A stretch of DNA of 64,000 nucleotides from Malacoraja senta. Lineage: Eukaryota. The stretch lies in NCBI GenBank assembly GCA_038087875.1, contig JAXLNO010002693.1, positions 1-64,000 of the forward strand, given 5' to 3'. Position numbers and translations under genes: made by a program. Of this stretch, positions 1,260 through 31,862 are shown piece after piece. The notes below the pieces were generated by a model. The model saw only the letters and a list, made by a program, of their open reading frames with translations, did no database searches and was not told where the DNA came from. The first letter of the stretch is position 1. Every line of letters starts with the position of its first letter.

Positions 1260-1584
1260 CTTCCACAATCAGCAGCGTTGGAATTACAGAGTGACATTTT
1301 CCAACATTGAGCTTCAGGTGGCACCGGTATTTATCATATCCTCCCGGTTCAATCGCGCCACCATCATCTAGAAATCTTTCTGCCTGAGGTTCTCCACGAA
1401 TCTGAACCGACCCCCTCCGGCATCCTGCGTCACTTCACCGCAAACCGGGATATGTACAGTTAAACAGAAGGCTGGGTGAGGATGTGATCAGTGGGTGGCT
1501 AAATGTACACGGCAACACAGCGGAGGCTCCTTCCACGGCAGACACGCACCAGACCGGATATTGTCCCAACATGGTACGGAATGT
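1260..1584 (-). pseudogene. SIGLEC15-like V-set exon, copy 1 (internal deletions, frameshift, stop)
   Basis: Acceptor atatag|AC at 1584, donor G|gtgaga at 1260; homologous to 12975-13361 but 325 nt; lacks the C-strand Trp segment; F strand reads YRCHLKL. Confidence 0.85.
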
Positions 1585-1739
1585 CTATATGTCGAGAGAG
1601 ATAGAAAGAGGAAGGGAGGCGGGGGGGGGGGGGGCATGGGCGGAAATGGCTTTTAAAACATGGGGGGGGGCACAAAGCCGAAACTATCCGGCCCGCAGGC
1701 GTAATTTTTTTTCAATTACTTTTCGCGACCTTGGAACTG

Positions 1740-2225
1740 CAGCGAGACCTGGGTTAAGCGAGCCGACCTGGGTGCTACAGCCAGTCCTGCGGCATGCGAT
1801 CCGGCCTGGGCGTTACACCCAGTCACGGAGCAAGCGAGCCGACCTGGGCGCTACAGCCAGACCTGGGGCAAGCGAGCCGAGCTGGGCGCTACAGCCAGTC
1901 CCGAGGCAAGCGAGCAGACCTGGGCGCTACAGCCAGACCTGCCAACCGACCTGGGCGCTAGAGCCAGTCCCGGGGCAGGCGAGCCGATCTGGGAACTGCA
2001 GGTCCTTTGGCCCACCGTGTCCGCGTCGACCAGCAATAACCCCGTACACTAGCACCATCCGACACACTAGGGCCAATTGACAATTCACCGAAGCACTTAA
2101 CCTACAAACCTGCACGTCTTTCGAGTGTGGGGCAGGCCAGCCGACCTGGGCGTTACAGCCAGTCACGGGGCAGGCGAGCTGACCTGGGCGCTACAGCCAG
2201 ATCTGTGGCACGTAGGCGACCTGGG
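1740..2225. repeat. GC-rich ~38-bp minisatellite, interrupted by a SINE fragment (~2020-2130)
   Basis: Unit gcgagccgacctgggcgctacagccagacctggggcaa repeated about 10 times with variants. Confidence 0.85.
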
Positions 2226-3394
2226 ACTGGGTGGGGAGGGGGTTGTCCCCCACCTCTCAAAAAATGGGGGGAGGGACAGGTCCCCCCCATACCCCCCAGG
2301 ATTTCAGGGGGTGGTTAACGTTAGTACGAGGAACAGATGCGGAGTTCCAAATCCACACTTTTCCCGGGGTGTTGTCACAAGCGATGTCTTCAGATGTCGG
2401 TGGTACAGATACATCTACACGGGGAGTGGGTTACAGGCTGCGATATAATCAACAGTTCATGTGTGTGTGAATCGCGTCTGTTCCCCGGCTCAGTTGTTTT
2501 TTATAATGTTGCTGATTTACTTTCTGGAGAGGGGACATGTGTCTACATTTTGCGGCACCGGTTACGGGTTCCCTCATGGTTACAGCGGTGGAGATGGCTA
2601 TTCGGCCCATTGAGTCTACACTGACTCCATGGATCATCATTACAGTCAGTCCGACTTCCCCACCACATTCTCGACCCACAGCCCTGCAACTTCCTTCCTT
2701 TCATATACCTCCCCCGCTGTCCTTTGAACGCCCCGGGTAAGTCTGCCCGCCACTTCCACCCCAACCGCCTCCCCCACCCCCCACCCCCGACCCTGCTCCC
2801 TGCGAGGACTCATGTCCCCCCAGCAGCACACTTGGTTCTTTGGCCAACACCAAGAAATCTAAATCGTCATCTCTTATGCGTCCACCCATGGGAACAACAG
2901 CCCTGTACACAATGTTAAATCCTTCCATTAGATCTCCTCACGACCTCGGTGTGAGGAGCTGGAAACCAGTCGGCCCCTCCAGCTCGCACCTGCGGTCGAT
3001 AACATCGCGGTTGCTCTGCTGATAATTCTTTCTCCACATCCCCGCCTGCTCCCGGCAATGTTGCCCCCCCCCCTCTTGCTGATCGAGAGTCTGACTCGGT
3101 TTTATGAAGGGCGGTCTCCATACGCATTTTCCTCCATTTGCCTCGCCACCCGGTCACCCTCACCAGGAGATCGGTGGGTCAAGAGGGCGCCTCACCACCA
3201 CCTTCTGAAGGACACTATATGGACAATATATAAAATAAATGTATTATTATTATTATTAATATCAACACATTCCCCACCCGCCCCACCCCATACATTGGCA
3301 AACCTGAGCCAAAGTACAAACAGCTGGAGCGCGGTACATTGGGGGAGATGACGAGACAGAGGAGATAAGAAGGAGACAACCAAAAGGCACCTCC

Positions 3395-3455
3395 TGTAAC
3401 CCTGGACTGAGACGGAGAGCAGGACGGTGCAGAGACAAACGCGGAGAGAGCGCAT
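3395..3455 (-). pseudogene. SIGLEC15-like leader exon, copy 1 (donor mutated GT>GG)
   Basis: MRSLRVCLCTVLLSVSVQGY; junction reads A|ggaggt where copy 2 has A|gtaggt. Confidence 0.8.
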
Positions 3456-3726
3456 CGCCAACGCGTCGCTCAAATGCGGAACTTGCTCTGTAGGTTCCTT
3501 CACTTCCTGTCAAAAGTTGAGGAACTATTTTAATTATTTATAATTCGTTATTTATAGCGGACCACTGTTACGAACAAAACACAAGTTACTGGAGGAACCC
3601 AATCGTTCAAGCTGCATCTATGAAGGGATATGGACAGACGACCTCTGAAGTCAGGCCCCGACCCGACATTTCCCCCCAAAGATGCCGCTGGCCGGTGAGT
3701 TCCTCCGGCACTTTGGACGCAGAATT

Positions 3727-4317
3727 GGGCCTGTCCCACTTGATCGTCATTTCCGCATCACGCAGATGGCGCGCGAAGATTTTGTACATCACAAAATCCT
3801 GCGACGCCGCGCGCGGCCGCGCGTCACTACCTATGTAGTGACGCGCGGCCGGGACGACAGATGGTGCAATGGGCTAAGTGTTCGGCTGGCAACCGGAAGG
3901 TAGCCGGTTCGAATCCCGCTTGGAGTGCATACTGTCGTTGTGTCCTTGGGCAAGACACTTCACCCACCTTTGCCTGCGTGTGAATGTGTGTGAATGTGTG
4001 TGAGTGATTGGTGGTGGTCGGAGGGGCCGTAGGCGCAAATTAGCACCCACGCTTCCGTCAGTCTGCCCCAGGGCAGCTGTGGCTACAGAAGTAGCTTACC
4101 ACCACCGAGTGTGACTGAGGAGTGAATGAATAATGCGATGTAAAGCGCCTTGAGTATTAGAAAGGCGCTATATAAATCCCATCCATCATTATTATTATTA
4201 TGTCATCGCGCACCATGCGCGCATCACGTGCGTGTCATGATGCGCGCGTCGTGCGTCGTGACGCGTAAATGATGTGGCGTAAATTACGCGCAAATGACGG
4301 CCAAGTGGGACAGGCCC
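3727..4317. mobile_element. MITE with 16-bp terminal inverted repeats (PIF/Harbinger-like)
   Basis: gggcctgtcccacttg (3727-3742) and caagtgggacaggccc (4302-4317); internal palindrome gcgcgtcactacctatgtagtgacgcgc. Confidence 0.8.
3851..4200 (+). mobile_element. tRNA-derived CORE-type SINE with L2-like tail, nested in the MITE
   Basis: B-box ggttcgaatccc, CORE-like gtgtccttgggcaagacactt, tail tgtaaagcgccttgagtattagaaaggcgctatataaat followed by (tta)n. Confidence 0.8.
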
Positions 4318-4339
4318 TTGACATTGCCCAGGCAAACGG

Positions 4340-5300: not shown

Positions 5301-5429
5301 TTCATGCAGAGCACTGTTGTGAGCATAACACAGGTTACTGGAGCAACTGAACAGGTCAAGCTGCAGCTGTGCAGGGAAATGGGTAGGCGACGTCAGACTG
5401 TTGTAGGAAGGAACTGCAGATGCTGGTTG

Positions 5430-5680
5430 AAACCGAAGATAGACACAAAATGGTGGGGTAACTCAGCGGGACAGGCAGCATCTCTGGAACTGGGGAATGG
5501 GTGACGTTTCCGGTCAAGTCTGATAGAGGGTCTCGACTCGAAACGTCACCCATTCCTTCCCGCTGAGTTGCTCCGGCATTTTGTGTCTATCGGAGGACGT
5601 CTGAAGTCAGGCGCCGATTGGATACATTTGTCCATTTCCCCCCATAGATGCTGGCTGGGCCGCTGAGTTCTTCCAGCACT
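5430..5680. repeat. Penelope-associated short repeat
   Basis: actcagcgggacaggcagcatctctgg...gggtgacgtttc motif and its inverted copy; the same motif recurs at ~14620-14790, 15750-16000, 18920-19020, 32230-32360, 55930-56070 and 60770-61000. Confidence 0.6.
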
Positions 5681-6317: not shown

Positions 6318-8056
6318 GGAAACCTCCTCATCGGAAACGTGGCCGACGGGCAGGACTTCAGGTCAGAATGAAGCGCAGGGGACTTCGGCCCCCTCTCCCT
6401 ACTATCCTACTGGTCAATGTACAGTCACTAGAAAATAAAGTGGAGGACTTAAGGGCAAGACTGCTTTATCAAAGGGAGCCGAGGGAATGCTCGGTGTTCT
6501 GTTTCACAGAGACATGGCTCACCCCCAGCGCCCCAGACTCAGCGGTCCAGCCTGAAGGGTTTTCCATCCATAATATGGACCGTACCCTGGCATATGGGAA
6601 AGGGAGAGGAGGGGGCATCTGCCTCATGGTCAACTGTGCGTGGTGCTCAGACGTGGCAGTCCTGTCCAACTCCTGCTCTCCACACCTCGAACACCTGGCG
6701 GTGAAGTGCCGTCCCTTCTACCTTCCGAGGGAATTCACCTCCATCATCCTGACCGCGGTATACATTCCACCCCAGGCAGACGTCCGTCTGGCACTGGAGG
6801 AGCTGCACGCCATGGTCAACAAACACCAGACGTCTCATCCCGAGGCATTTACCACCATTGCTGGGGACGTCAATAAGGCAAACCTAAAGAAATCACTTCC
6901 TAACTTTCACCAACATGTCTCCTGCTGCACCAGAAGACCAAACACCCTCGACCACTGCTACACCACCATCAAGAATGCCTATCGCTCTATCCCTCGCCCT
7001 CACTTCGGTAAATCCGACCATACCACGGTGCTGCTTCTTCCTGCCTACAGGCCGCAATTAAAGAGCGCACCCCCAGAGGTGAGGACAGTACAGAGCTGGT
7101 CGGGGGAGGAAGAGGAACAACTACAGGACTGTTTGGACTATATTTAAGAGGGAGTTAGATGTGGCCCTTGTGGCTAAAGGGATCAGGGGGTATGGAGAGA
7201 AAGCAGGTACAGGATACTGAGTTGGATGATCAGCCATGATCATATTGAATGGCGGTGCAGGCTCGAAGGGCCGAATGGCCTACTCCTGCCCCTATTTTTC
7301 TATGTTTCTATGTTTCTATGTAGACTGGGCAATGTTCAAGGACTCGGCAACGGACTTGAACGTATACGCCACAGTCGTTACAGACTTCATTAAGAAATGT
7401 GTGGAGGACTGCATCCCTACAAAAACCTTCCGAGTGTTTCCCAATCAGAAACCTTGGAAGAACTTTGAGATCCGCTCTCTCCTGAAGACCAGACACCGGG
7501 CATTCATGTCTGATGATACAGTGGTCTACAAGAATTCCAGATACGACCTTGGTAAGGCCATCAAAAAGGGCAAAAGGGACTTCTGCTCCAAACTGGAGGA
7601 AGAGACAGATGTTCGGCGGCTGTGGCAGGGCCTGAATGCAATCACCTCTTACAAGGCGAAATCAGGAGGCAGCTCGAATGTCGGCGAAACATCACTCCCT
7701 GATGAGCTCAATGCGTTTTACGCACGCTTTGATAGGGAGAACACCGATGTGCCTTCCCGAGCCCTCATTCGCTGTGATGGTATTTCAGTCTCAGTCACAG
7801 AGGCCGACGTCAGGAAATCCTTCAGTGGTGAATCCTCGAAAAGCGCCTGGACCTGATGGTATACCTGGTCGTGTTCTAAAAACCTGTGCGGACCAACTGG
7901 CTGGAGTTTTTACGGACATTTTCAACCTCTCACTTCTGAGGTCTGAGGTTCCTACCTGCTTCAAAAGGGCATCAATTATACCACTGCCCAAGAAGAGTAA
8001 GGTGACGTGCCTCAATGACTATCGACCTGTGGCACTAACGCCTGCGGTGATGAAGT
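6318..8056 (+). mobile_element. Rex1/Babar non-LTR retrotransposon (endonuclease to start of RT), 3'-truncated
   Basis: 259-aa ORF with NVQSLENK, CFTETWL, RGGG, CRPFYLPREF, AVYIPP, TLDHCY, FGKSDH; downstream [14 protein letters not shown]...NDYRPVALT; stops abruptly at atgaagt. Confidence 0.9.
7139..7320 (+). mobile_element. Young CR1 3'-end insertion inside Rex1
   Basis: About 180 nt nearly identical to the reverse complement of 56420-56600; interrupts the Rex1 frame between QDCLD and VDW. Confidence 0.85.
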
Positions 8057-8381
8057 TCCCATGCTAGCGTTCCCATGTTCCGGAGATGGACCTCCGCCAG
8101 ACACAGGTACCCGTGACTGTCCTACACACTCAGCTGCTTTATCCTGGTTGAGGCGTTTCCCCGTACTGGGTCCCCGACCAGCTCGAACCGGGTTGCTCCG
8201 TTCTCTGCCGCCCAGGATCCGGTAGCTTGGGGTCTGAACGTGACGATGTGTCGGTAGGGATCCTTCCTCATCCATGTGACCACAAGTGAGACAAAGCCGG
8301 CTTTCGGCGGTGGGAACACACAGGGCAACGTGGCCGAAGCCCCCTCAGTCCCAGTCACCACTGAGACATTCCCGCCGGCAG
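8057..8381 (-). pseudogene. Second V-set exon (V2) of copy 2; premature stop, 3' end deleted
   Basis: Acceptor ttccctcag|CT; AGGNVSVVTGTEGASATLPCVFPPP...VTWMRK...RFELVGDPVRGNASTRIKQLSV*DSHGYLCLAEV; TAG at 8122-8124; abuts truncated Rex1. Confidence 0.85.
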
Positions 8382-8439
8382 CTGAGGGAAGGATAGACAC
8401 CGGAATGTATCAGCGTTCTGTGGGTGAATCGTCTTGTAC

Positions 8440-8670
8440 CGACCTCTCCCTGTGGGAGTTGGTGGAGGCGGTGCCCAGAATGGAGCTGACAGTGACGGTC
8501 CCATGGAATATGAGTCGCAGGGCGCAGGGGACAGGACATATTCAAGGATGGCTCCAGATCAGTGGTCACTGGGCGCCTCTGACAGCGCGGCTCTCCCTCG
8601 GCGCTGCGCTGAGAGCGAGAGAGTGAGCGACAGCGAACCCGCGCCTCCCCGGAACCTAACATTGTTCTCC
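8440..8670 (-). pseudogene. Degraded C2-set-like exon of copy 2
   Basis: QRSAEGEP resembles the SIGLEC15 C2 motif LCTAEGEP (CGC for TGC); downstream TVTVSSILGTAST resembles YTCTAANSLGRSE; frameshifted; paralog at 29765-30000. Confidence 0.5.
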
Positions 8671-9269
8671 ACGTGGAATATTCAATGTGTGAAGCGGTGA
8701 ACTACACACCGAAAGGGAGATCGGGCGTGGAGAACGAGGAGGGCTGTCGAAAAATGGGGAGGGTCGACGCTATCCAAGTGGGACACGGCGGGGAAGGGAA
8801 AGGGAGGGGGAGGCGTGGGGGAGGGGGGTGGTCAATGTGGGAGAGAGGCGTTAGGGAGGGGAAGGCAATAAAACTGTTCGGTGAACATTTGTAACTTTGT
8901 CGACGGCAAACGTGGTAACACTTGTGTACTGCCTAGGTGAAGTCTGCTACATCAATTCACTGCGTTGTCTGTAAAACAAGGTATTTCACGGTACCTAGGT
9001 ACATGCGAGAATACAGTGTCATTAGATCATTGAATTGAATCATCAACATGTATTGATCAGCATTGTACCTGGGGAACCCTTGGTCCGTGAGCTCTTGGGC
9101 AGCTACATTCTGAATGTGTGGCTGGCGATTGGAGAAGGGAGCAGGGATTTAGATTTCTCGACCACTGGGATCTTTTCTGGGGCAGGGGTGACCTGTACAA
9201 AAAGACGTGTTGCACCTTAATTGGAGGGGGCAACATCTTGGTAGGCAGGTTTGCTAGTGGTATGCGGAA

Positions 9270-11126: not shown

Positions 11127-11199
11127 CATTAAACAGACATTAGCTTGAATACTGCAGAATCCGTATGAGTAGAACTGCTAAATAGCCAAGGGCAGAAAA

Positions 11200-12955: not shown

Positions 12956-12974
12956 CTCTGAAAATTGTTCTCAC

Positions 12975-13361
12975 CTTCCACATACACCGTCGTATACACC
13001 CCAGAGTGAACGTGTCCAACATTGAGCTCCAGGCTGCACCCGTACGCATAATGGTCACTCAGGCTCGTTTGCTTAACCATCATCGAGGCATCTCCCTGCC
13101 TGAGGTTTCCCACGAATCTGAACCGACCCCCTCCGGCCTCCTGTGCCACTTCACCGCACCGGCAGCGGCCGGGACCGGCATATGTGCAGTTATACACAAA
13201 GCTGGAAGACGTGCGTGTCACCCTATTCCACAGCACGGAGCCGGTGAGGTCGTGATCAATGTGTGGGTGGGTGAATGTACACGGCAAAACAGGGGAGGCC
13301 CCTTCCACGGCAAACACCACATCCGGCCCGGATATTGTCCAACCATCGTTGCACGAAACGT
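12975..13361 (-). CDS. SIGLEC15-like V-set exon, copy 2 (open frame, intact splice sites)
   Basis: 387 nt, phase 1-1; acceptor tttccag|AC, donor G|gtgaga; GWTISGPDVVFAVEGASPVLPCTFTHPH...SVLW...YNC...RCRC...RFRFVGNLRQGDAS...YGCSLEL; LPCTFTHPH matches SIGLEC15. Confidence 0.85.
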
Positions 13362-13377
13362 CTGGAAAGAGAGGGAG

Positions 13378-13395
13378 AGAGAGAGCGAGCGAGCG

Positions 13396-13432
<37 letters not shown>
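13378..13432. repeat. (GA)n/(GAGC)n microsatellite in the acceptor polypyrimidine tract of the copy 2 V exon
   Basis: gagagagcgagcgagcgagcgagagagag... directly visible. Confidence 0.95.
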
Positions 13433-13515
13433 CAGGGAGAGTGCGAGAGAGCAACGTCCTTACCCCTGCAACGTCCTTACCCCTGCAACGTCCTTACTTT
13501 CACATACTGTACGGG

Positions 13516-14297: not shown

Positions 14298-14367
14298 TGT
14301 AACCGTGGACTGAGACGGCGAGCAGGACGGTGCAGAGACAAACGCGGAGAGAGCGCATCGCCAACAT
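14298..14367 (-). CDS. SIGLEC15-like leader exon, copy 2 (intact)
   Basis: MLAMRSLRVCLCTVLLAVSVHGY + A|gtaggt; phase 1, compatible with the V exon at 13361. Confidence 0.8.
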
Positions 14368-14399: not shown

Positions 14400-14460
14400 T
14401 AGATTCTTGACGCTGAAATGCAGAACTTGCTCTATAAGTTCCTTCACTTCCTGCCAAGAG
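14400..14460 (-). promoter_or_regulatory. Putative promoter of copy 2 with ETS-like GGAAGT site
   Basis: Minus strand gcaggaagtgaaggaacttatagagcaagttctgcatttcagcgtcaagaa; similar at 3470-3510, 31900-31930 (partial) and 32095-32150. Confidence 0.45.
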
Positions 14461-14829
14461 ATGAGGAACTGTTCTAATTATTTATAATTCGTTACTTCTA
14501 GCGGAGCATTGTTATGAGCAAAACGTAAGTTACTGCAATAACTCATCTTGCATCAAGCTGCATCTCTGAAAGGAAATGGACAGACTCTGCACTCAGTCCC
14601 CGACCCGACATTTTATTCGTCCACGTTCCTCCCTAGATGCAGCTGACCCGTTGTTCAGTCTGAAGAAGTGTCTCGACCCGGAAGGTCACCCATTTCTTCT
14701 CTCTAGAGATGCGGTCTGTCCCGCTGAGTTACTCCAGCATTTTGTGTCTACCGTCGACGCAGCTGACCCGTTGAGTTCCTCCAGCATTTTGGACCCGGAC
14801 TTACTAACCTAGGCCAGGTAAACAGGTTT

Positions 14830-15700
14830 GGACCAACTTAATCCCCTTCAAGAATAATCCCCATGAACACATAAGTACAACTTCTAGCATAAAGGAAGCC
14901 GGCTGACGTTGCAGATTGTACTTTGCACAATGTTGGTGCATTTCAATTCTCCAAATGTGTAGATGAGGGAAACGGTGCAACTCAATCTATGCATGTTGTT
15001 CTACGCACCTCTCTTGTTTGCTTTAACGAATGCTGTGCGGAGGATGTGTGTTTTATGTATCCTCTTTGGGGATATACAGTAGTGTGTTCTACTTCTTCAT
15101 TTACCTGTGACGCCCCGTAATCCCATTCTATCTGTGACCCCTCTGATCCACCTCCCAATGGGATAACAAGAACAAAGTTTGTTTGGTGACAGCCATTTTT
15201 GGTTGAACCCTGTTTCATCACCAGCCATCAGCCAGCCATTCACACTGATCCCTCATTAATCCCATTCAGTCCAATACAGGTTGTATATCACACCCGGGCA
15301 CCCGTCATATCGGTTTGCTTCTATTCATCCTGAGGCTGTGAACAATGTTCCTGGACATTACTGTTTTTTTAATGAGAAAGTGAATCTAAAGAATGAATCA
15401 CACGTTTTCACGCTACAGTGTGAGCGACAGCAGAACTCAACAAAGACAACCCCACAGTCTTCACCAACAGCTCATTTGCTCTCTCGCGGTTTTCTTTTCT
15501 TGACACTGAAATGCAAAAGTTGAGCAGAGAGAAAAGCCATTCAAGGGATGTGAGGCACGACAGCAAACTTTGCCTCCAGGGAATCCTACCATGACGATAG
15601 GGAAGCACTGCAATGAACGTCATGGGTGAAGGATCCAAAAATGTTAACTTCCTCCCAAAGTGAAGCAGTGTGAAGCGGATAGGGCACACAGAGAGGTGTA
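14830..15700 (-). pseudogene. Type-B relic module 2
   Basis: Leader-like GCLC*VLLSLTL*REN at ~15400-15450; homologous to 4340-5300. Confidence 0.45.
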
Positions 15701-16904
15701 AGTGGATTATGTAATTTCAAGCGGAAAGTTTATGCTGGTTTAAACTGAAGATAGTCACAAAATGCTGGAGCATTTCTGGATAGAAGGAAGGGGTAACTTT
15801 TCGGGTCGAATCTGAAGCAGGGTCTCGACCCGAAACGTCAACCATTCCTTCTATCCAGAGCAGCTGCATGTCCCGATGTGTTACTCCCGCATTTTGTATC
15901 TATCAGACGAAGCCTGAAGTCAGTTCCGGACCCGATACATCTGTCCATTTCCCTCCATTGATGCTGCCTGGGCCCTGAGTTCCTCCAGCACTTTGTGTGT
16001 TCGCTGAAGATTCCAGCATTTGTTGTCCCTTGTGTCCCAGGGTTAGCGTCCTGGTGTAATGTAGTGCTGAAAGAGGTCATGCCCAACATGTCCACAATGA
16101 CCATGGAGTATCCATCTATGGTAATGCGAGTGCCCCCTGAGAAATACAGAGAAAGTCGAAGAGCTTTTCAAGAAGACATTTGGAGGGTAAATTGGAAATA
16201 TCACTGGCAGAGAAGATTAATAAAAATCTCGTTCACCTTAGAAAGTCGGACAAGGAATGCAAAGTGATCTATTTTGTTAAGCTGAACCAGAGCAAAACTG
16301 ACACAGTGAATAAGAGGCTCATAAGTTCATGTGATTGGAGTAGAATGAGACCATTTGGCTCATCAAGTCTACTCCGCCGTTCAATCATGGCTGATCTATC
16401 TTTTCCTCTCAACCACATTCTCTTGCCTTTTGCCCAATGTCCTGTCATATATTAATCAAGAATCTATCAATCTCTGCCTTAAAAATATCCGCTAATTTGG
16501 ACTTTCGATGGCAATGAATTCCACTGATTCACCACTCTCTGGCTAAATAAATGTATCCTAGTCTCCTTTCTAAAGGCACGTCCTGTTATTCCGAAGCCAT
16601 GGCCTCTGGTCCCAGACTCTCCCGCTGGTGGAAACATCCTCATCTGGAGAGTGTTTCAAAACAGCGACCTAGTTGAACAATGATATAGTTCCCTGGGGTT
16701 GACAGTTAGACACGATGGTGAAGAAGGCGTATGGCACGCTAGCCGTCATCGGTCGGCACATTCAATAATATAAGTGGGGGTCATGTGACAGCCGTTCAGG
16801 AGTTGGACGAACCTAAGATTTGAGGAGAGTGTGGTCTCTGCGGAAAGCGTAAGTGGGTGTGAATGAGAAGATGATGGGATCGCGGTCAAGCAAACGGGGT
16901 TGAC

Positions 16905-18920
16905 CTAACTTAATCCCTTGCAAGAGCAATCCCTATGAACACACGTGCAACTCCCAGCATCAAGGAAGCCGGCTGACGTTGGAGAATGTACTTTGCACAA
17001 TATTGGGGGATAGAGTGTGTTCTGCTTCTTTACTTCCTCGTGATGCCCGGTAATCCCACCCGTGACCTCTCTTTTGGAGCTCCCATTGGGATAACATGAA
17101 CAATTATTGTGCAATGTTTGTTTGGAGGCAGCCAGTTTAAGCTGAATCCCGTGGGCACTCCTCGTATAACTTCATCGGTCTTCCAGCATCAGGGCCATTT
17201 CAACTCTGTGTTTGGTAGTGTCCCAATCCCGTTAACTCAGATTTCCGGTGACATCTCCAGTCCCCCATAGAACAATGCAACTGGAGGCCGGGGTTTGATC
17301 GGGCAGCAATAGGAGGGATCTACTTCTGCAGAAAAAGTCCCGGACACTCACCGACCGCCGGTGGAGTCCAAGTTTCACTCCCATCCTGGATCTCCTCCCC
17401 AATTCCTGGGTGCCCTCTGCTATCAACAAGATCTCACGAGTGTTTAATTGTCACATGCACCATGACAACAATGACATTGCTGCTGTAACACTGCAGGTCC
17501 ACTAAATGCAAGAACAAAACTGTAAGTTTGAGGTAAGTTGTCAGTTATGCTTGTAAACCAAACCATAGCAGTGCAAGCCGCAGTAATGGAACCTCAGTGC
17601 AAAGTTCTTCGTGTTTTGGCCCGGAGGTTGGCTTGTGGTCCGGATGCTGAATGTGGTTCAGCAGCGTGATGGTTGTGGACAGCCTGATTGCATTCGTGTA
17701 AAGTTCTTTGATGGACAGCAGGCAATATAAAAGGCTTTCACTGTACCTCGATACATGTGACAATAATAAAGTAAAGTAAAATAAAGTAAAACAAAGTAAA
17801 GTAAACTGAAAACCTGTTCTTTAAACATACAATCATGGCTCTCATGTCCCTGCATCTTCCTCTTGGTACGAGCAGTGAGATAAGAACGTGAGCAGGGTAG
17901 TGTTGATATTTGATGACATTAGCTGTATTGTTGAGCCCAGCGTTCATGTAGACCCTTCATGCTGTTCCGTATGTCACTGTTCATGGCTCCCGGCATCTAC
18001 AGGGAGATCGCTGACGCTCTATTGTTCGGGAAGACAAAGGCCAGGGCGATTGAAGCAACAATTATAGAAAGATGTACGAATACAGGCCATCCAACCCTCC
18101 AAGTATGCGCCGATGGAGATGAGGAGGAATTTATTTAGTCAGAGGGAGGTGAATCTGTGGAAGCTATTACCACGGAATCGCTGTGGAGGCCGAATCAATG
18201 GATATTTTTAAGGCGGAGATTAACAGATTCTTGATTGGTCCGGGAATCAGGGGTTATGGGGTGAAGGCAGGAGAGTGCGATTGAGAGAAAATATAGATTA
18301 GCCATGATTGAATGGCGGAGTAGATTTGATGGGCCGAATGGCCTAATTTAGCTCCAATTACTTATTAATATGAACTGATGAGTCATCAACCACCCATTCG
18401 CATGAATCCCACATTAACCCCATTCAACCCAAAGCAAGCCGCATCTCACTCCGGGGTACATATCATTTCGGGTTATTTCCATGTATCCTGAGGCTGTAAG
18501 CTATTTTTCTGGACTTCACGGTTTGTGTGAAGAAATAAATGTAACACATGAATAACCCGCTGTCACCCTGCAACGAGAGCGATACCTGGGCCCTGCAAAG
18601 ACAAACCTATAGGCCTTTCGTCAGAGACAGCTCAGTTGCTGCTCTCTCGCGGATTCGTCATTGTTTTTTTTAATTTCTGAGAAATACATTATTTCGTCAT
18701 TTGTTGCCCAATGTTCAGGCAGCACTAAACTACAACAATGACATTCACGACTAAAAGGAAGCAGGAGCCATAGCAGAGAGCAAAGTCATTCTCGGAATAA
18801 AAACAACAGCAACCTCTGCCTCCATGCGAATGCTTTATTTAATGTACGAAAGCGCTCCAATGAATGTCGGAGGTCAAGAATCAAAAAAATGTTCACTTCC
18901 TACCAAGCGGAATCAGTGTG
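16905..18920 (-). pseudogene. Type-B relic module 3 (split by repeat insertions at 17130-18400)
   Basis: Leader-like VCLCRAQVSLSLQGDS at ~18555-18610; Ig-like NVSRL/LDAGSCTCV at ~16935-16985. Confidence 0.45.
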
Positions 18921-19799
18921 AGACTGATCAGTCTGAAGATGGGTCTCGACCCGAAACGTCACCCATTCCTTCTCTCCAGAGTTGCTGCCTGTCCCGCTGA
19001 GTTGCGCCAGCCTTATATGTCTACCTGCGTTTACTTGTGGCCGTCAGTGATAGGAGAGGTAGCGGAGAGCCCTGTGCTTGTGTCCCAGGTATTGACAAAT
19101 TCTCCAGTGTCAACACCGGGGCCGGTTTACTGCTTAAAGCATTTCGCAATGAACCCAAGCATTTTCAAATAAGTGTCCGGAACCGGTCACTGTTGAGTTT
19201 AAAGGGAGCGAGGAAACTAGGGTCCGTGTGAGCTTACTTTACCTTATTTTATTTTGGGTTAGTTTAGCAGAGTTTACTTTACTTCACTTTGGATTATATT
19301 AGATAGTTTATGACTGTCACATCTACAGATGTACAGTGAGAAGCTTTTATCTGCGTGCTATCCAGTCAAAGAGATTACTTTACATGAATAGAAGCAATAG
19401 GTCCGCAGTGCACAGATACAGGTTAAAGGATAAACAGTTATACAACATTTAGTGTAAGGTAAAGTCGGATACAATGAGATGAAAGCGATGCTGGAGTAAC
19501 TCGGGGAAGAAAACCAATTATCATGCCTGTTTAGCGTCTTCCAGGTGGGAAAGATGAGAGGCGCGAATGGCAATGTTGGCGTGTGTCTTTGGGGGTATTA
19601 GCTGCATTGTTGAAGTCTTCTGTTGACCAATCTCGAGCATATTTCGCATTTCATGGCTAATTGCAGCTGAAGGGAGATTTCTGAAACTCTGTTGTCGAGG
19701 AAGACAAGGGACAGGGCGGTGGAGCAAGATGGATAGAGAAATGTAGCTGGGCAGCAGGTCCCAGTCCCAACCTCCACCCCCCCCCGAGTCTGCACCAAC

Positions 19800-20350
19800 C
19801 ATCAGCCACCCATGCACACTGATCCCACATTAATCCAATTTAGTCCAATAGAGACTGCACTTCACTCCCCAGTACATGTCATATCGATTTGGCTCTTTAG
19901 ACCCTGACGCCGTGGACTCTGCTTCTGGACTTTACAGTTTGTGTGAGGAGGTAAATGTTAGGAATGAACCACCCGTTGTCACGCTGCAATGTCAGTGACA
20001 ACTGGACCCAGCAAAGACAAACACACAGATATTTGTTTATCAATATCTCAGTGCTGTGACCTCCTCGCTCTGCTGTTTATATCCTGACGCTGAAATGCAG
20101 AAGTTGATCCTTCGTTTGCTGCAGAATGTCTAGAAGCTGCTAAACTACAAAACGAACATTAATGGCACAAACGAAGCAGGTTGTAGAACAGAGCGCAAAT
20201 GTTTCTAAGAACCTAAGTGAACAACAACAACAACCTCTTCCCCCATGGGAATCATACTTTTAATGCAGAGAAACATTCCAGTGAACGCCAGGGTGAAGCA
20301 TCCACAAATGTTCACTTCTTGCCACACGGAAGCAGCGTGAGACAGACAGA
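19800..20350 (-). pseudogene. Type-B relic module 4 (promoter/leader only)
   Basis: Leader-like VCLCWVQLSLTLQRDN at ~19970-20025; promoter-like tcctgacgctgaaatgcagaagttg at ~20081-20105. Confidence 0.45.
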
Positions 20351-20439
20351 CACAGGGAGGAGTGAGTGAGTGTTTATCCGTGAGTGGGGTTACAGAGAGA
20401 TCTGTGTTTGTGCTCCAGCAATTGATAAGCGTGCACAGA

Positions 20440-20770
20440 ATCTCTTGTCCAGAGTAGGGGAATTGAGGACCAGAGGACATGGGTTCAAGGTGAAGGGCAA
20501 AAGATTTAATACGAATCAGAGTGGTACCCTTTTCACACAAAGGGTGGTGTGTGTATGGAACAAGCTGCCAGATGAGGTAGCTGAGGCTGGAACTATTCCA
20601 AGGTTTAAGAAACAGTTGGACATGTACATGGATAGAACAAGTTTGGAGGGATATGGATCAAGCGCAGGCAAGTGGGACTAGTGTAGCTGGGACATGTTGG
20701 CCGGTGTGGGCAAGTTGGGCCGAAGGGCCCGTTTCCACACTGTATCACTCTATGACTCTAAACTGTCTTA
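20440..20770 (+). mobile_element. CR1/L2-type LINE 3' end
   Basis: RTRGHGFKVKGKRF...FTQRVVCVWNKLP, tail ctgtatcactctatgactcta. Confidence 0.8.
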
Positions 20771-20795
20771 TGACACAACAGAAAAGACATAAAGC

Positions 20796-20990
20796 GCTGG
20801 AGTAACTCAGCGGGTCAGGCCGCATCTCTGGAGAACATGGATAGGTGACGTTTCACAGAGTGCTGGAGTATCTCAGCGGGTCAGGCAGCATCTCTGGAGA
20901 ACATGGATACGTGACGTTTCACAGAGTGCTGGAGTAACTCGGCGAGTCAGGCAGCATCTCTGGAGAACATGGATTGGTGACGTTTCTGGT
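20796..20990 (+). repeat. Three tandem 66-bp units of the Penelope-associated motif
   Basis: gctggagta starts at 20796, 20862 and 20928. Confidence 0.9.
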
Positions 20991-21029
20991 CGGGACCATT
21001 CTTCAGTGTGGAGATTACAATGATATAGT

Positions 21030-22060
21030 AAGTGGCGGCGCTGCCTTAGCAGCTGCGGCTCCCCTGCAGTCCGTCTGTTGTTTTTCGTTTTTGTTGTTTT
21101 CTTCTGTCCTGTTTTAGTTAATTTTAGTTTATTGGGTTGTGTATGTGTGTGTGTGGGGGGGGGGGGGTGGGGTGGATGGGAGACACATGGTTTTGTTCTC
21201 TTCCTTCGGGGGAATGCGACCTTTTCTTGTCGTATCCCCCGTCTCCGTCTCCGTCTGCGCTGAGGCCTAATGGCGGAGCTGGCGGCCTCCAACTGGGTCC
21301 GACCTCGAGGCACCGGAGCAGAGCCAGCCAGGACTTACGAGCGCGAGGCTGGCCGACTTCGGGGCTGTGGCGGCGTACCGACGTTCCGGTGGCGGCGACC
21401 CGACTTAGGAGCTGTGTCGGCGTTCCGGCGCGGCGGCGACCCGATTTCGGAGCTGTGGCGGCGTTCCGGCATACCGGCGACGGCGGCGACCCGACTTCGG
21501 AGCTGTGGCGGCGACCCGACTTCGGAGCTGTGGCGGCGTTCCGGCGGCGACCCGACTTCGGAGCTGTGGCGGCGTACCGACGTTCCGGCGGCGGCCCGAC
21601 TGCGGAGGCTCGGCCGCGGGCCCAGTGGACGACATCGTCGGGACCTCGCAGGTCACAGGTTGGTGACCTGTTTTTTCCGGAGCTCACGCAACAACAGCTT
21701 CGTCCGCTGGACTGGAGGGCGGCAGCTTCGGCAGATTCGACCACCCCGGGCCGCGGAGTTTGAACCGGCCCGTTCGCGGAGCTCGGATTCAGCCGCGGGA
21801 CTGACTTACTTACCATCACCCGGCGGGGTCACAACATCGAAAGCCTGGATCGCCTCAGCGCAGAGGGAGAACAAGGAGGGAAGAGACAAAGACTTTAAGA
21901 CTTTTGCCTTGCATCACAGTGAATAGGTGCCTGGTGAACTCACTGTGGTGGATGTTAAATTTGTGTTTATTGTGTGTTTTTGCTATTTTATTATATGCAT
22001 GACTGCAAGGCAACGAAATTTCGTTCAGACCGGAAGGTCTGAATGACAATAAAGGATACT
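21030..22060 (+). mobile_element. Non-autonomous interspersed repeat with internal GC-rich ~33-bp minisatellite (21345-21605)
   Basis: Unit cggcgacccgacttcggagctgtggcggcgttc; 3' end ...tgaatgacaataaagg resembles Rex/L2-type tails. Confidence 0.55.
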
Positions 22061-22588
22061 TTACTTTAGTTGAGAGATACAGCGCGGAAACATGCCGCGC
22101 CCGCACAGAACAGCGATCCCGCACACTAACACTGTCCGACACAAACTAGAGACAATTTACATTTATATCATGCCTATTAACCTACAAACGTGTACGTCTT
22201 TTAAAATGTGAGAGGAAACCGAAGATCTCGGAAAATAACTACGCGGTCACAGGAGAAATACAAACTCCGTACAGACTGCACCCGTAGTCTTGATCGAACT
22301 CGGGGCCCTGGCGCTGTAAGCGTTGTATAAGGCAACAACAACACCGCACCACTGTACAGGAACCACCGTGACAGGAATTAAAAACTTTACAGCATAAATG
22401 TTATCCTCGTACATAGTCGTACATTGACATCGTTCCCAAACTCCCCGTCTCTCACTGCTACATCGATGAACGCATTGGAGCCTTTTTTTCATGCACCCGA
22501 ACAGAACTCGCCAATTTCATTAATTTCATCATCTATCTCCACCTGTTCCGAAATACATGGATCATCTCTGGCACCTCTCTCCCATTAT

Positions 22589-22948
22589 NNNNNNNNNNNN
22601 NNNNNNNNNNNNNNNNNNNNNNNNNNNNNNNNNNNNNNNNNNNNNNNNNNNNNNNNNNNNNNNNNNNNNNNNNNNNNNNNNNNNNNNNNNNNNNNNNNNN
22701 NNNNNNNNNNNNNNNNNNNNNNNNNNNNNNNNNNNNNNNNNNNNNNNNNNNNNNNNNNNNNNNNNNNNNNNNNNNNNNNNNNNNNNNNNNNNNNNNNNNN
22801 NNNNNNNNNNNNNNNNNNNNNNNNNNNNNNNNNNNNNNNNNNNNNNNNNNNNNNNNNNNNNNNNNNNNNNNNNNNNNNNNNNNNNNNNNNNNNNNNNNNN
22901 NNNNNNNNNNNNNNNNNNNNNNNNNNNNNNNNNNNNNNNNNNNNNNNN
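22589..22948. other. Assembly gap (360 N)
   Basis: N run. Confidence 1.
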
Positions 22949-24789
22949 CACCCACCCTCTCTCTCTTTATCTCTCACATTTTAATGCATTTATTTTCTGG
23001 GTTATTGCGTTAATGTGCCCATAAAATTATAGCAAATACGAATTTCGTTGATCCCTTCCTGGTGCGAATGACATATAAACACTCCTGACTTGCCCATCCA
23101 GCCATTCTGCTCTTCATTCCCACTTCGGATCCCGCCCACTCCCGGTAACCTGTCATCCTCTTGCCTACCGAGCGCCTCACTGTGTGTCGTCAAAACTGAT
23201 ATCCATGTTCATCTCTGTTCAGCTCCCCTAGCACTGAGTGAACTATACGCGCGCACCGCGGCTCTCTGTCCTCAGGGCCTACCACGTCGCTTCCCCTCAT
23301 TCTTTTCGGCCAACGGAACATTATGTCGGTGTGGGGACATAATGTTCCCGTTAAATTGAGGAAGTTGTGCCGAAAAGCCGGTTTACACTATGACTCTATG
23401 CTTCCATTTCCAGCACTCGCAGTGTCGAGTGTCAAGTTAATTGCTGGACATATTCCATCTATAATGCCGTGTTTATATTGTAGTCACATCATGGCATTCC
23501 TGTGATTGTTCTAATTTACTGTAGCGCCGTTCTATTATATTTCACCACATGGGCGGTAGTGCAGCAGTTAGAGATGCTACCTCCCTACGCCCGCAATCGC
23601 TGATTCAATCCTAACCTCGGATGCTGTCTGTGTGGAGCTTGCATGAACTCCCTGTGATCATGTTGGATTCAACGGGTGCTCCCAATTTCACCCCACCTCG
23701 CAAAGGCGTGCGGGTCAGTAGTCTAATTGATAGATTTAAATTGCCCCACATTTGGTTGGCAGCAGTATCGGGGGACGTCATTTGCTGGGCATACATGAGG
23801 GAGCAAGTTACATGGAAAGAGACGAGGAGTGGTGTTGATGGGATTGCTCTGCTGGATCCTATTGGCCCAATGGCCTGCATTTGAGGTATGATAGATATGT
23901 CAGAATAGTAAGTAAATTGAAACTTTGTTCCAGATAAACCAAATCAAATAAATGACAGATAAATGTATTTAATATGAATTTTATACATTGACTGTATTAT
24001 TTTCCAATCTATTTAAAAAACAAATCTAATAGCGACTAGTCTAACGTAAATTCCACTGTTATCTTTGACACCGGTGGGCGGGGTGACCGCACTCACTTTA
24101 AACTCGCCGCGGTATCGCTTCCTTGATATTCACCGGCTTCACGAGAAACATTTAGATAGGTACATGCATTTGTTACGTTTAAAGATATGTTGTTGCAACG
24201 CAGGCAGGTGGGACGGGTGTAGAAAGGACATGTTTGTTGGTGTGGTCAGGTTGGGCCGAAGGGCCTGTTTCCACGCTGTATCATTCTATGACTCTCTGAC
24301 TCATTGGACAAAACAGCAAAAAGTAAGTAAGTCAATGTATGGCGGTGCATAAATGGAAATGACAACCAATAATCCAGAAAATCGCCCAGTCCGGCATCAT
24401 CATAGTCTGCAGTGTGCCAGAATAAAGCGCGCATTTGTGTCATCATTAAGTGTTTCACAGTGGCACATTGAAACATCAGTAACACGCACAGTGTGACATC
24501 AAGGTGTACCCTAGAGATCATTAACTAGCCAATGTTTGCAGACGGTACCCTGAGTCACAACGAATGAGTGCAATGAGAAGAGTAGATTAGATCAGCTGAC
24601 AGTTTCAGCGAGGGCAACATGGGCTGGTAAATAATGTTGATGGAAAACTGCGCTTGTCGGCCTCCTGCGCTGGATTAGACTCGACCTGCTTTGAGGAAAT
24701 TATATGACCGATTAAAACGTGAGACTCGGTAATTGTTCAACAAAACCACCTTTAACAATTCCGTTAATATCCATCAGATAATCTGTGAA

Positions 24790-25130
24790 TAGATTTAGAT
24801 CGAGACGAACAAATCTCTCCTGAGTGTAGATTTCGTTGTCAGTGTCGGCGTTGGACAACAAAATTTCAGTTGGACCCACAGACACATAACTTCAATAACT
24901 GAGCGAATGAAGTGTATCAAATGGACGTGTTTATTATCAGGTGAACTGTCTTGGGTTATAGAATGATATTGTTCAGATGGTAAACGGGAACAGCTATGGC
25001 AGATGGAATTAATCCCGACAAAAGAATGTATTGCGTGTTGCTTGGACAAATCGGCGTAGGACATAACCATTCAATGTAATGGTCCATGCGAATACTGAGG
25101 AACAGTGATATCTTGGTGTGAAAATCCCAG
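24790..25130 (-). mobile_element. Highly decayed LTR-retroelement/ERV integrase-like relic
   Basis: Across frames: IRMDHYIE...QYILL, SSPDN..HFIRSVIEVMC...LKFCCP, resembling the integrase core LQMDFIE...YCLV...SDNGxHF...VI..LC...HCAYHP. Confidence 0.4.
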
Positions 25131-27624: not shown

Positions 27625-29210
27625 AATCTCTGGAATGGGACATGACCATCAAGGGAATCAAGGGATGCAAGTTAGTGGAGTGCCTATTACCAGGGAGAAT
27701 GTGCTTCAGAAGCTGAAAGGGCTGCAAGTGGATGTCACTTGGGCCGGATGGACTGCACCCTTGGGTTCTGAAACAGGTGGCCTTAGAGATTATGGAGGCA
27801 TGATAATGATATTTCAGGAATCATTAGCATTGTGACCAGGAATGGTCCCAGGTGATTGAAACATTGCCAATATCACCCGGCTGCACTAAAAGGGAGCAAG
27901 GCAGAATTGTGGGAACTGGCCGGTTAGTCTGACTTCGGTGATTGGTAAAATTTTAGACTCCATGATAAACGATGCGGTTATGAAGTACGTAGACAGTCAA
28001 AGGAGAGTCAGTAGACGTTGTTTACTTAGATTTTCAGAAAGCCTTTATAAGGTGCCACACGTTATGCTACTTAGGAAGATGAGAGCCCATGGTATCAAAG
28101 GGCAGATACAAGCATGGATAGCAGATTGGCTGCATTGCGGATAACAAAGAGGGGGATTTTTCTCGTTGATTGATGGAGTTCTGCAAGGATCGGTGCTGGG
28201 GCTGCTACTCTTCACGTTGTATATTAATAGATTGAACGAGGGGATTGAAGGCTTTATCGCCATGTTTGCGGATGATACGAAGATAGCTGGAGGGGCAGGT
28301 AGTGTAGAGAAAGCCGGGACTCTGCAAAAGGACTTGGACAGGTTGGGAGAGTGGGCAGAGAAGTGGCAGATGGAATATAGTGTAGCAAACAGTGGAATCA
28401 TGCATTTTGGGAGTAGGAATAAAGGCGTGGACTATTTTCTCTATGGGGTGAAAATCCAGAAATCGGAGGTGCAAAGGGACTTGTGAGTTGTGAGTGCTGG
28501 TGCAGGATTCCCATAAAATGAATCTGCAAGTCGAATCGGTAGTAAAGAAAGCAAACTCAATGCTAGCATTTATTTCAACAGGGATTGAAAACAAAAAAAC
28601 GGGGATCTAATGCTGAGGCTCTATAATGCGCTGGTCAGGCCGCATTTAGAATATTGCGAGCAATTTTGGGCACCATATTTGAGGAAGAATGTGCTGGCTC
28701 TGGAGAGGGTCCAGAGGAAGTTTACAATAATGACCCCAGGAATGAGTTGGTTAATCTATGATGAGCGTTTGTCGGCACTGAGCCGTTACTCGCTGGAGTT
28801 TAGAAAAAAAATGAGGGGGGGGGGGGGGGACCGCATTGAAACATACAAAATAGTGAAAGGCTTGTTTCGAGTGGATGTGGAGAGGACGTTTCCATTAGTG
28901 GGAGAGTGCAGAACTAGAGGTTATAGCCTCAGAATTAACGGACGTTCTAGTAGGAAGATTAGACATTTCTTTAGTCAGAGAGTGGTGAATCTGTGGATTT
29001 ATTTGCCACATAAAGCTGTAGAAACCAAGTCAGTTGATATTTTGAAGGCAGAGATAGATAGATTCTTGATTAATGCGGGTGTCAGAGGTTATGGGGAGAA
29101 GGCAGGAGAATGGGGTTAGGAGGGAGAGATAGATCAGCCATGACTGAATGGCGATGTAGACTTGATGGGACGCATGGCATAATTGTACTCATATTCCTTA
29201 TGACCTTAAG
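27625..29210 (+). mobile_element. CR1-like LINE, decayed RT to tail
   Basis: GVLQGSVLGLLLFTLYIN...MFADDTKI; [12 protein letters not shown]. Confidence 0.9.
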
Positions 29211-29328
29211 ACGTTATGAGGCGAGGCTGTGTCCGCTAAGCCCAGAGAGACAGGGTTTCCGGTTCCTGCTCCAGTCCCTCGCTCTACACCCTCGCTGTGC
29301 ACTGCAGAATGTGCCGATGGTTTCTTAC

Positions 29329-29725
29329 CGGCTGTGACCCGCAGGCGGACCTCACGCTGCGACAGATGGATAAACGGCGGTTTTACTTTGAATAGATGAT
29401 TTGGGGACCATACAGGGCGGTAGTAATCAGGTTTCCTGATCTCCACCAGACACAGGTAGCCGCGACTGTTCTTCCCCACTCAGCAGCGTTATCCTGGTTG
29501 AGGCGTTTCCCTGCTCTGGGTCCACGATGAACCGAGTTGCTCCGTTCTCCGCAGCCCAGGATCCATTAGCTTGGGGTCTGAACTTGACGATATGTCGGTA
29601 GGGTTCCTTCCTCATCCATGTGACCGCGAGTGGGACGTGGTTGAGTGCAGGCGGTGGGAACACACATGGGAGCCTGGCCGAAACACCCTCAGTCCCAGTT
29701 ATCACTGAGACATTCCCGCCGGGAC
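29329..29725 (-). pseudogene. Second V-set exon (V2) of copy 3; +1 frameshift
   Basis: Acceptor ttccctcag|GT, donor G|gtaaga; 397 nt (3n+1); LPCVF, VTWMRK, then in the shifted frame GYLCLVEIRK...VRLRVTA. Confidence 0.85.
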
Positions 29726-29764
29726 CTGAGGGAATGTATCAGAGTTCTGTGGGTGAATGATTTT

Positions 29765-30000
29765 GTACCGATCTCTCCCTGTGGTGAGTGGGTGGAGGCG
29801 GTGCCCAGTGTCGTGATGACAGTGACGGTCCAAGGGAAGGTGGGTCAGAGGGCGCAGGTGACAGGACATATTCAAGGATGGCTCCGGATCAGGGCTCACT
29901 GGTCGCCCCTGACAGCGCGGCTCTCCGGCGCTGCCCTGAGAGCGACAGGGAACCCGCGCCTTCACCAGCGCGCAACATTGTTCTCCACGGGGCGAAGTCA
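29765..30000 (-). pseudogene. Degraded C2-set-like exon of copy 3
   Basis: QGSAGEP and TVTVITTLGTAST; paralog of 8440-8670. Confidence 0.5.
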
Positions 30001-30797
30001 GGAGAATAGGGAGGAGGGAGAGATAGATCAGCCATGATTGAATGGCGGTGGGCTTAATGGGCCGACCGGCCTAATTCTGCGCCTATCACTTATGACCATA
30101 TGACCATTCAATGTGAGAAGTGGTGAACTCCATATCAGGCTGGAGATGCGCCCACAAAGGATTGGGCACCGGACACCGACACTGCCTTTACTACTGGGCA
30201 CTTCAGTGTCCATTGCTATTTTAGATCTGAGAATAAAACGCCAACAAGGTAGTTAACGCCTTCTTATTTCTCCTTACCCAATCTAACTTTATTTGATTGA
30301 ATGGTACAGCACGTAGACAGGGCCATCGGCTCACCGAGTGCACGCCGCCCATGCATCACCCGTTAACATTTGTGCTGTTATCTCCCTTTGGCATCCACTC
30401 TCCACAATTTAGAGGCAATTTACAGAAAGTCAATTAACCTACACACGTCTTCTGGATGTGGGGGGAAACCGGAAGAAACCCACCCGGTCCAGGAAGAACT
30501 TGCAAACTTGCAAACTTCGCACACAGCCAGCACTCGAGGTCAGGATCGAACCCGAGGTACTGGCGCTGTGAGGCAGCGGTTTCATTACCCTCGCTATGTT
30601 GCCGGCCCTTTGACAGGATCACAGGTAGGATCAGCGCCTAGTCTAACCCCAGGAGCGCACTATCCTGTGGGATTCACTTGAGAGGGTTCAGGAGCATCGC
30701 CTGGGGCTGATCAACATGTATTGATAACACATGTTTCGGGGGTGCCTGAGGTCTGTGGGATCTGGGTGATCTAAAATCTCTATACATTGGTTCTCAC

Positions 30798-31178
30798 CTA
30801 TCACAGTCAGGCTCGTTCGAACCACACTTTGAAAATCTCCAATATTGAGCTCCAGGCGGCACCAATACTTATCATCGTCCTTCCGACTCAGTCGCTCCAC
30901 CATTATCGAGGCATCTCCTTCTCTGAGGCTCCCCAATCTGAACCGAGCGCCTCCAGCCTCTTGTGTCACTTCATCCCTCCGGGTGCGTCCGGAACCGGGA
31001 TATGTACAATTGAACACCAGGCTGTTATCCCACGTTTTCTCTCTGTACCACAGCACGGAGCCGGTGACGATGTGATCAGTGGGTGGGTGGGTGAATGTAC
31101 ACGGCAACACAGCGGGGGCACCTTCCACGGAAGACACATCAACAGCACCAGAGATTGTCCAACCGCTGTACGAATAGT
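30798..31178 (-). pseudogene. SIGLEC15-like V-set exon, copy 3 (open frame, acceptor AG>AA)
   Basis: 381 nt open: GWTISGAVDVSSVEGAPAVLPCTFTHP...SVLW...YWCRLEL; acceptor position reads tttgcaa|AC versus tttccag|AC in copy 2. Confidence 0.85.
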
Positions 31179-31795
31179 TTGCAAAGAGAGGGAGAGAAGA
31201 CGATACGCAGCTGAATAGATCCACAGTTTCAGAACCACAGTGAGCCTGGGCTATTGTCACAAGTGGTGTCATCACATATGAATGAGACTGGTTTATAAAT
31301 CTACACAGTGGAGTAAGTCACTGGCCAGGATCTACAATGGGATAGCTATGGGTCTGGATAGAACATAGAACAGGCCAGGAATAGGTTTAATGATACAGAG
31401 CGGAAACATGATTTGTTCCCGGGTCTCTACCGCTGCGCCACCGCGCTGCACGAATGAACTGCAGTCTAATTCTAATTCTCCATTCTCGTCGACACCGACT
31501 AACATTTCACCCCTTTGCTTGTCATATGCCCCATTTTGGTTTATAAAGGCCGGGTTCCGCGTGCCATTTCTCCCGCTTGCCCTGACACCAAATGACCTGC
31601 AAAGGAGTGCAGTGGCCCATGACGATATTTGATCCCATCTCACCAAGGGCAATTAGTGCTGGTCAATATCACTGAATTCTCCCCTACCACCGTCGCAATT
31701 GACAGACGTCGGCGTGAGCCAAAGTACAAAGAGCAGAAGCATCGACAGAGTGGAAACAAGAACACTAGGAAAGACGATGAGACAACAACACCCAC

Positions 31796-31862
31796 TGTAA
31801 CTCTGGACTGAGAACGAGAGCAGGACGGTGCAAAGACAAACCCGGAGAGAGCGCATCGCCAT
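31796..31862 (-). CDS. SIGLEC15-like leader exon, copy 3
   Basis: MAMRSLRVCLCTVLLSFSVQSY + A|gtgggt. Confidence 0.8.

Follow-up and report, generated by a model that had tools for sequence, protein, structure and literature searches.

What do the Siglec-15-like exons on the minus strand of a skate contig encode, and do they still encode it? The stretch in question, the first 64,000 nucleotides of contig JAXLNO010002693.1 from Malacoraja senta (assembly GCA_038087875.1; this whole stretch is called the window below), carries a tandem cluster of such exons between positions 1,260 and 31,862. A sequence-only reading had proposed that they form receptor genes in which a Siglec-15-type V-set domain (V1), a degraded C2-like domain and a second, distinct V-set domain (V2) follow one another. 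The analysis presented here favors a different answer, to which we assign a probability of roughly 0.8: the window holds three old, tandem, unprocessed pseudogenes of a cartilaginous-fish receptor family derived from Siglec-15, and most likely none of them makes a receptor.

Searching both exon types as proteins against the window recovered three V1-type exons and two of V2 type, every one on the minus strand, and three leader exons were added by tblastn of 19 batoid homologues, with boundaries set by reading the DNA. The three paralogous minus-strand units recognized from the letters alone were thus found again by exon search and protein mapping: three tandem leader and V1 pairs, in two of which a V2 exon follows V1.

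31796-31856, minus strand: copy 3 leader exon, MRSLRVCLCTVLLSFSVQSY plus 1 nt, phase 1, donor GT at 31794-31795 (placed by tblastn of batoid proteins and by the sequence)
30798-31178, minus strand: copy 3 V1 exon, 381 nt, open, YWCRLEL with its arginine
29726-30797, minus strand: copy 3 intron between V1 and V2, including the "C2-like" stretch (about 29738-30070) and a high-copy repeat at about 30013-30242, recognized by repeat depth
29329-29725, minus strand: copy 3 V2 exon, 397 nt, donor GT intact
14298-14358, minus strand: copy 2 leader exon, MRSLRVCLCTVLLAVSVHGY plus 1 nt, donor GT intact
12975-13361, minus strand: copy 2 V1 exon, 387 nt, open, both splice sites intact, F-strand YGCSLEL
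8089-8381, minus strand: copy 2 V2 exon remnant, with a stop and a 3' truncation
3395-3455, minus strand: copy 1 leader exon, peptide identical to Rhinoraja MRSLRVCLCTVLLSVSVQGY, donor GG
1260-1584, minus strand: copy 1 V1 exon remnant, 325 nt against 384 in Rhinoraja

The V2 exon of copy 1 falls beyond the window edge. Leader, V1 and V2 exons follow one another in the order seen throughout the family, and all of their junctions are in phase 1, so that the exon boundaries read from the DNA bear out the phases that had been proposed. V1 and V2 exons alike match the Pfam V-set family. Pairwise, the copies diverge by 17-27% at the DNA level, and the duplications that produced them are therefore old. 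Immediately upstream of the copy 2 V1 acceptor lies a (AGAGAGCGAGAG)n microsatellite (13368-13451), and in Rhinoraja longicauda the V1 acceptor has a comparable CT-rich run ahead of it (locus L001, about 31330-31365).

The kinship of V1 with Siglec-15, which the sequence-only reading had asserted, is supported by a search against solved structures and by a domain tree. Among solved structures, the best match of copy 3 V1 is human Siglec-15 (7zoz, E 9.1e-13), the next families being CD33 and CAR at E ~2e-4, and in the domain tree the V1 domains of the family fall within a clade of Siglec-15 V domains (mammal, frog, teleosts, paddlefish and lungfish) with 98/95 support, the outgroup being thinly sampled as a single T-cell receptor (TCR) V segment from the window. 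The hallmark motifs of SIGLEC15 are present as claimed, but not every one of them in each copy: copy 2 has LPCTFTHPH, RFRFVGN and YGCSLE, and copy 3 has LPCTFTHPP, RFRLGS and YWCRLE. The F-strand arginine at the position of human R143 is kept in copy 3 and is replaced by serine in copy 2 and by histidine in copy 1; it has also been lost from the annotated Rhinoraja members P0001 and P0003, while most family members keep it. In Siglec-15, R143 is required for sialic-acid binding, and the membrane lysine binds DAP12/DAP10 (PMC7226832). By analogy, we infer that the family likewise binds sialic acid. V1 changes rapidly, with a ratio of nonsynonymous to synonymous substitution (dN/dS) of 0.7-1.4 even among annotated genes.

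Each of the three copies is disrupted. The sequence-only reading had overlooked the damage to the two V2 exons and to the V1 exon of copy 1. In copy 1, the GT of the leader donor has become GG, and the V1 exon shows a net loss of 59 nt relative to Rhinoraja together with in-frame stops and a frameshift. In copy 2, a TAG at 8122-8124 stops the reading frame of the V2 exon at a codon that is GAG or GAA in four relatives, and the final ~96 nt of the exon are missing, the homology ending at 8089 beside a long interspersed nuclear element (LINE).

6368-8067, plus strand: retroelement open reading frames (ORFs) abutting the truncated copy 2 V2; their translations read as LINE-like, of the endonuclease/reverse-transcriptase type

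Pfam searches of two pieces of these retroelement ORFs gave no match. The V1 exon of copy 2 is altered at 6 of the 34 positions that are invariant in its batoid relatives. In copy 3, the V1 acceptor at 31179-31180 is AA in place of AG, and those nearby alternative AGs that were checked by hand are out of frame; within the exon, a nearly invariant cysteine has become arginine and one residue has been deleted from the RFRFVGN motif. The V2 exon of the same copy, at 397 nt, is one base longer than a phase 1-1 exon, the extra base lying in a run of G at 29474-29477 and being found in none of the four other copies compared, and it has also suffered a 6-nt deletion. A contig of 531 nt from sequencing run X1 (29316-29846) matches the window letter for letter across this frameshift. 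Contig "joints" at about 29110-30020 were considered as possible splicing and rejected as cross-alignments of repeats.

The copies also lack the exon that anchors their relatives in the membrane. At the Rhinoraja and Leucoraja loci, the transmembrane (TM) exon lies about 1.3 kb past V2, and at the corresponding distance downstream of copy 3 V2 it is absent. A search of the whole 64-kb window for TM or cytoplasmic exons, whether of the lysine type or of the type bearing an immunoreceptor tyrosine-based inhibitory motif (ITIM), detected none by tblastn of the relatives' tails at E 50, by sensitive blastn with the downstream regions of Rhinoraja and Leucoraja, or with more than 200 collected proteins. 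Past copy 3 V2, homology with Rhinoraja stops at 29218, a LINE fragment lying about 40 bp away, and resumes only at 24657-24875, which is probably the remainder of the copy 3 3' end.

28002-29257, plus strand: LINE fragment, a reverse-transcriptase remnant, downstream of copy 3 V2
24657-24875, minus strand: match to the 3' end of Rhinoraja genes (L001 35646-35865 and 15636-15854)
22589-22948, no strand: assembly gap, intergenic, between units

The gap touches no exon, and family proteins have no match near it. Its flanks match L001 2782-2620 and 2396-2222, with order and strand kept and about 224 bp between them, and the window from 14400 to 24860 as a whole is collinear with L001 10000 to 613. 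Since the gap lies in intergenic DNA that is collinear with Rhinoraja, no exon is expected within it. With every copy disrupted and no TM exon in the window, the view of these copies as working receptor genes is not supported. Their retained introns and disabling lesions, in the form of stops, frameshifts and splice-site losses where relatives have an uninterrupted frame leading to a TM exon, are those of unprocessed pseudogenes.

The domain order from which these copies decayed is revealed by intact relatives. In the annotated proteins of Rhinoraja, Leucoraja, Amblyraja, Hypanus, Hemitrygon and Mobula, V1 leads directly into V2 in the arrangement leader-V1-V2-stalk-TM, and annotated relatives with this arrangement come from about 20 sharks, rays and one chimaera. 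At the genomic loci of two other skates, Rhinoraja and Leucoraja, there is one leader and one TM exon for each V1-V2 pair, with V1 and V2 adjacent and no exon intervening. The joining of V1 to V2 rests on the gene models of other species, on exon phases and on synteny. That V2 is a V-type domain is indicated by its alignments, which cover the V domain of Siglec-15 (residues 34-134, 37 bits) as well as those of CD276 and nectin-2; the C2 domain of Siglec-15 gave no alignment in the same comparison. In each of the proteins P0001 and P0033, Pfam recognizes two V-set stretches.

An AlphaFold model of P0001 from Rhinoraja, built from 112 sequences, reached a mean predicted local distance difference test score (pLDDT) of 88 and a predicted template-modeling score (pTM) of 0.80, and replaced an earlier, poor model built from 15 sequences (pLDDT 58). 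Its top Foldseek matches are tandem V-V chains, namely JAML, pIgR, a single-chain variable fragment (scFv) and VCBP3, and the V-C2 Siglecs (CD33 and Siglec-10) rank lower. Within V2, 15 batoid proteins carry the motif TWMRKDPYRHIVTF almost unchanged, one of them having IVAF, whereas V1 varies freely. The motif is exact in copy 2 and carries two changes (KEP and IVKF) in copy 3. It corresponds to residues 184-197 of P0001, where it spans the C and C' strands of the model, and its surface may be a conserved contact surface.

The joined models in relatives, the alignment of V2 to V domains, the Pfam matches and the fold matches together support a second V-type domain in the same gene, which the sequence-only reading had recognized, but they do not support the V-C2-V order that it had placed around it: because intact relatives run from V1 to V2 to TM with nothing between the V exons, that layout is not real. 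Its premise that Siglecs carry a single V-set domain likewise goes too far, since there are two in human Siglec-12, and tandem V domains occur in automatic models from lungfish, gar, newt, lamprey and chimaera that bear the name Siglec-15 or Siglec-12.

It remains to ask what the stretch between the V exons is, which lies at about 29738-30070 in copy 3 and 8408-8701 in copy 2 and had been taken for a degraded C2-like exon. The stretch is conserved between these copies, and is equally collinear with the intron of Rhinoraja and Leucoraja. Its open pieces match no Pfam family even at E 10. When a nine-sequence profile of Siglec-15 C2 domains was run with filters off against all six-frame pieces of the window, they were not listed at E 100. 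Should the stretch nonetheless be a true relic of a Siglec-15 C2 domain, the ancestor of the family would be a V-C2 gene to which V2 was added on the downstream side and whose C2 decayed. The only pairwise match speaks for this, the C2 domain of Callorhinchus, against which copies 2 and 3 rank 1st and 3rd of 3523 six-frame pieces and give a shuffle p of ~0.001 in one of 18 tests, with SAEGEP and THIPWDRH-like strings shared. Yet that match is weak (tblastn E 0.37), the C2 domains of Mobula and Heptranchias, which would be expected to be as close or closer, give none, and the reading frame is not kept in Rhinoraja. Moreover, in those chondrichthyan proteins where a C2 domain is present, it comes after a pair of V domains and does not separate them. 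A C2 origin is thus improbable, and on the sequence comparisons the stretch is treated as intron with a small residual chance of being a relic. Less probable still, and indeed barely credible, is the notion that V1 and V2 belong to separate neighboring genes, which prediction programs have fused elsewhere. It draws on the fact that exact-protein look-ups for transcript-derived records of Scyliorhinus and Leucoraja members returned only the genome record or nothing, so that the models retrieved are all genome-derived. It would have to account, however, for three species in which a single leader precedes V1, V2 has no leader of its own and a single TM exon comes after V2, for phase 1 at every junction, for dozens of independent gene models in about 20 species that join the two domains, and for a two-domain model that folds confidently as a single chain.

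A stronger, though still unlikely, challenge to the pseudogene interpretation is that at least one copy works, either copy 3 through an allele with an intact frame or copy 2 through a leader-V1 product, the protein being secreted or anchored by way of unrecognized exons. Several observations weigh on that side. V1 is open in copies 2 and 3, and copy 2, whose leader, V1 and V1 splice sites are all intact, could still be transcribed. In a single low-depth contig of run X2 the extra base, at about 29470, is missing, and this contig could represent either an intact allele or a paralogue; moreover, because X1 may be the sample from which the assembly itself was made, its agreement with the window is no independent proof of the frameshift. 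The V exons are only lightly degraded, with 7 invariant positions altered per copy against 0-6 in annotated batoid relatives; since dN/dS is high in working genes too, neither it nor the counts of invariant residues separate dead copies from live ones. Finally, the sequencing runs that cover the locus are DNA only, from one organism, so that the lack of expression is something we infer. Against a working copy stand the lost acceptor of copy 3, near which the alternative AGs checked were out of frame, the stop and truncation in the V2 exon of copy 2, and the want of any TM, tail or other family exon to complete a product in 64 kb. Similarly broken copies also occur in the Rhinoraja cluster. Together, these considerations leave three disabled copies as the preferred interpretation.

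One of the broken Rhinoraja copies lies at L001 12464-12915, an upstream tandem copy with a 1-nt deletion in V2. Its annotated product, the 144-residue P0076, begins in the shifted frame (MDEEGSLPTHRHVQT), and the annotation probably presents a broken copy as a protein.

The cluster in the window is unlikely to be the whole complement of this genome. Summed contig depth in X1 is about 8-12 times that of single-copy sequence over the conserved cores of V2 (29455-29651) and V1 (31031-31227), which suggests roughly ten further copies, at 90% identity or more, elsewhere in the genome.

Beyond Malacoraja, a profile search among named proteins gave 77 homologues, all of them elasmobranch, and an exhaustive profile search gave 1038 proteins at E values up to 0.001. 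Chimaera members with the V2 motif are also present among the named examples. The expansion within cartilaginous fish that had been suggested for these genes is supported. Lungfish, gar, newt, caecilian and lamprey have tandem Siglec-15-type V domains of their own. Some family members carry a lysine within the membrane segment (P[LF]GLK) and a short tail, and others have a longer tail with C-terminal V[IT]YA.V motifs, which are ITIM-like. The further suggestion of a possibly undescribed receptor family of the immunoglobulin superfamily stands in part: no published description was found in the full-text literature on Siglec or Siglec-15 in cartilaginous fish and lamprey or on the MDIR receptors of skates, but the proteins are already present in automatic annotations, and it is from automatic gene models only that the family is known.

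These features combine into an account of the family. It probably descends from Siglec-15, and an intact member is a type I membrane protein with a leader, V1, V2, a short stalk and one membrane helix, in which V1 is the Siglec-15-type domain, usually with the sialic-acid arginine, and V2 a second, distinct V-type domain. By analogy with Siglec-15, the lysine forms would pair with a DAP12-type adaptor and activate, and the ITIM forms would presumably inhibit, so that the two together would make up a paired-receptor family. The three window copies arose by old tandem duplication and have since been disabled by lost splice sites, a stop codon and frameshifts, as well as by truncation associated with retroelements and the disappearance of the TM exon. 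What has happened to them is rated as ordinary birth-and-death turnover within the family. Whether they are the relics of an undescribed, paired activating and inhibitory family of cartilaginous fish, which arose from Siglec-15 with V2 replacing C2, undergoes rapid birth and death, and in which open V1 exons might still donate sequence to neighboring intact genes, is a fuller proposition for which we see about even odds.

Some further features of the window were recorded. GC-rich minisatellites at 1726-1993 and 21391-21579, with units of 38/114 nt and 25-50 nt, yield long spurious ORFs on both strands. On the plus strand at 45301-45651, 13 kb from the Siglec-15-like cluster, lies a TCR alpha/delta V-like segment, an open V-type exon reading ...VTLTCNYDTTSTGYTLFWYRQYPGRQPEF...DSAVYYCALW that matches Pfam V-set at E 1e-13.

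Because the three copies are most likely dead, they have little importance on their own. Their value is that they correct the proposed architecture, the real layout being V-V, and that they provide direct evidence of quick turnover of the family in sharks and rays through duplication, retroelement damage and decay, a process that parallels the turnover of mammalian CD33-related Siglecs and of other paired immune receptors. With its tandem V-V ectodomain, its lysine or ITIM forms, its near-invariant V2 motif and its fast-changing V1, the family itself merits description.

Comparison with known systems places the family closest to Siglec-15, as represented by the human protein (7zoz) and conserved in bony vertebrates. 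Like Siglec-15, it has an N-terminal V domain with LPCTFTHP, RFR.xGN and Y.CR.E motifs, the sialic-acid arginine in most members, and, in intact relatives, a membrane lysine with a short tail. Unlike Siglec-15, its second domain is V-type and not C2, it exists in many copies and not one, and it includes ITIM-tailed, putatively inhibitory forms; the window copies differ further in being broken and without a TM exon. Chondrichthyan proteins automatically named Siglec-15 or Siglec-12 (P0098 of Mobula, P0101 of Callorhinchus and P0093 of Heptranchias) share with the family the tandem V domains and the lysine in the membrane helix, and their first V domain groups with Siglec-15 V domains. They are, however, V-V-C2-TM(Lys) proteins that keep a C2 domain after the second V, which the window family does not have, and in the domain tree that second V is not cleanly grouped with the family V2. 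They appear to be the true Siglec-15 orthologues.

In structure, the two-domain model is matched best by JAML (3mj6, 3mj7 and 3mj9), which similarly places two V-type domains in one chain. At 13% sequence identity and with no Siglec motifs, this is a likeness of fold layout and not of family. CD33-related Siglecs, with pairs such as Siglec-5/14, form fast-evolving clusters with charged-TM activating and ITIM-bearing inhibitory forms and frequent pseudogenes. The cartilaginous-fish family resembles them in each of these respects, its activating and inhibitory roles being putative, and Siglec-12 also parallels it in having a second V domain in a Siglec. The CD33-related Siglecs nevertheless carry C2 domains and are of different origin, because V1 of the family is far closer to Siglec-15 than to CD33.

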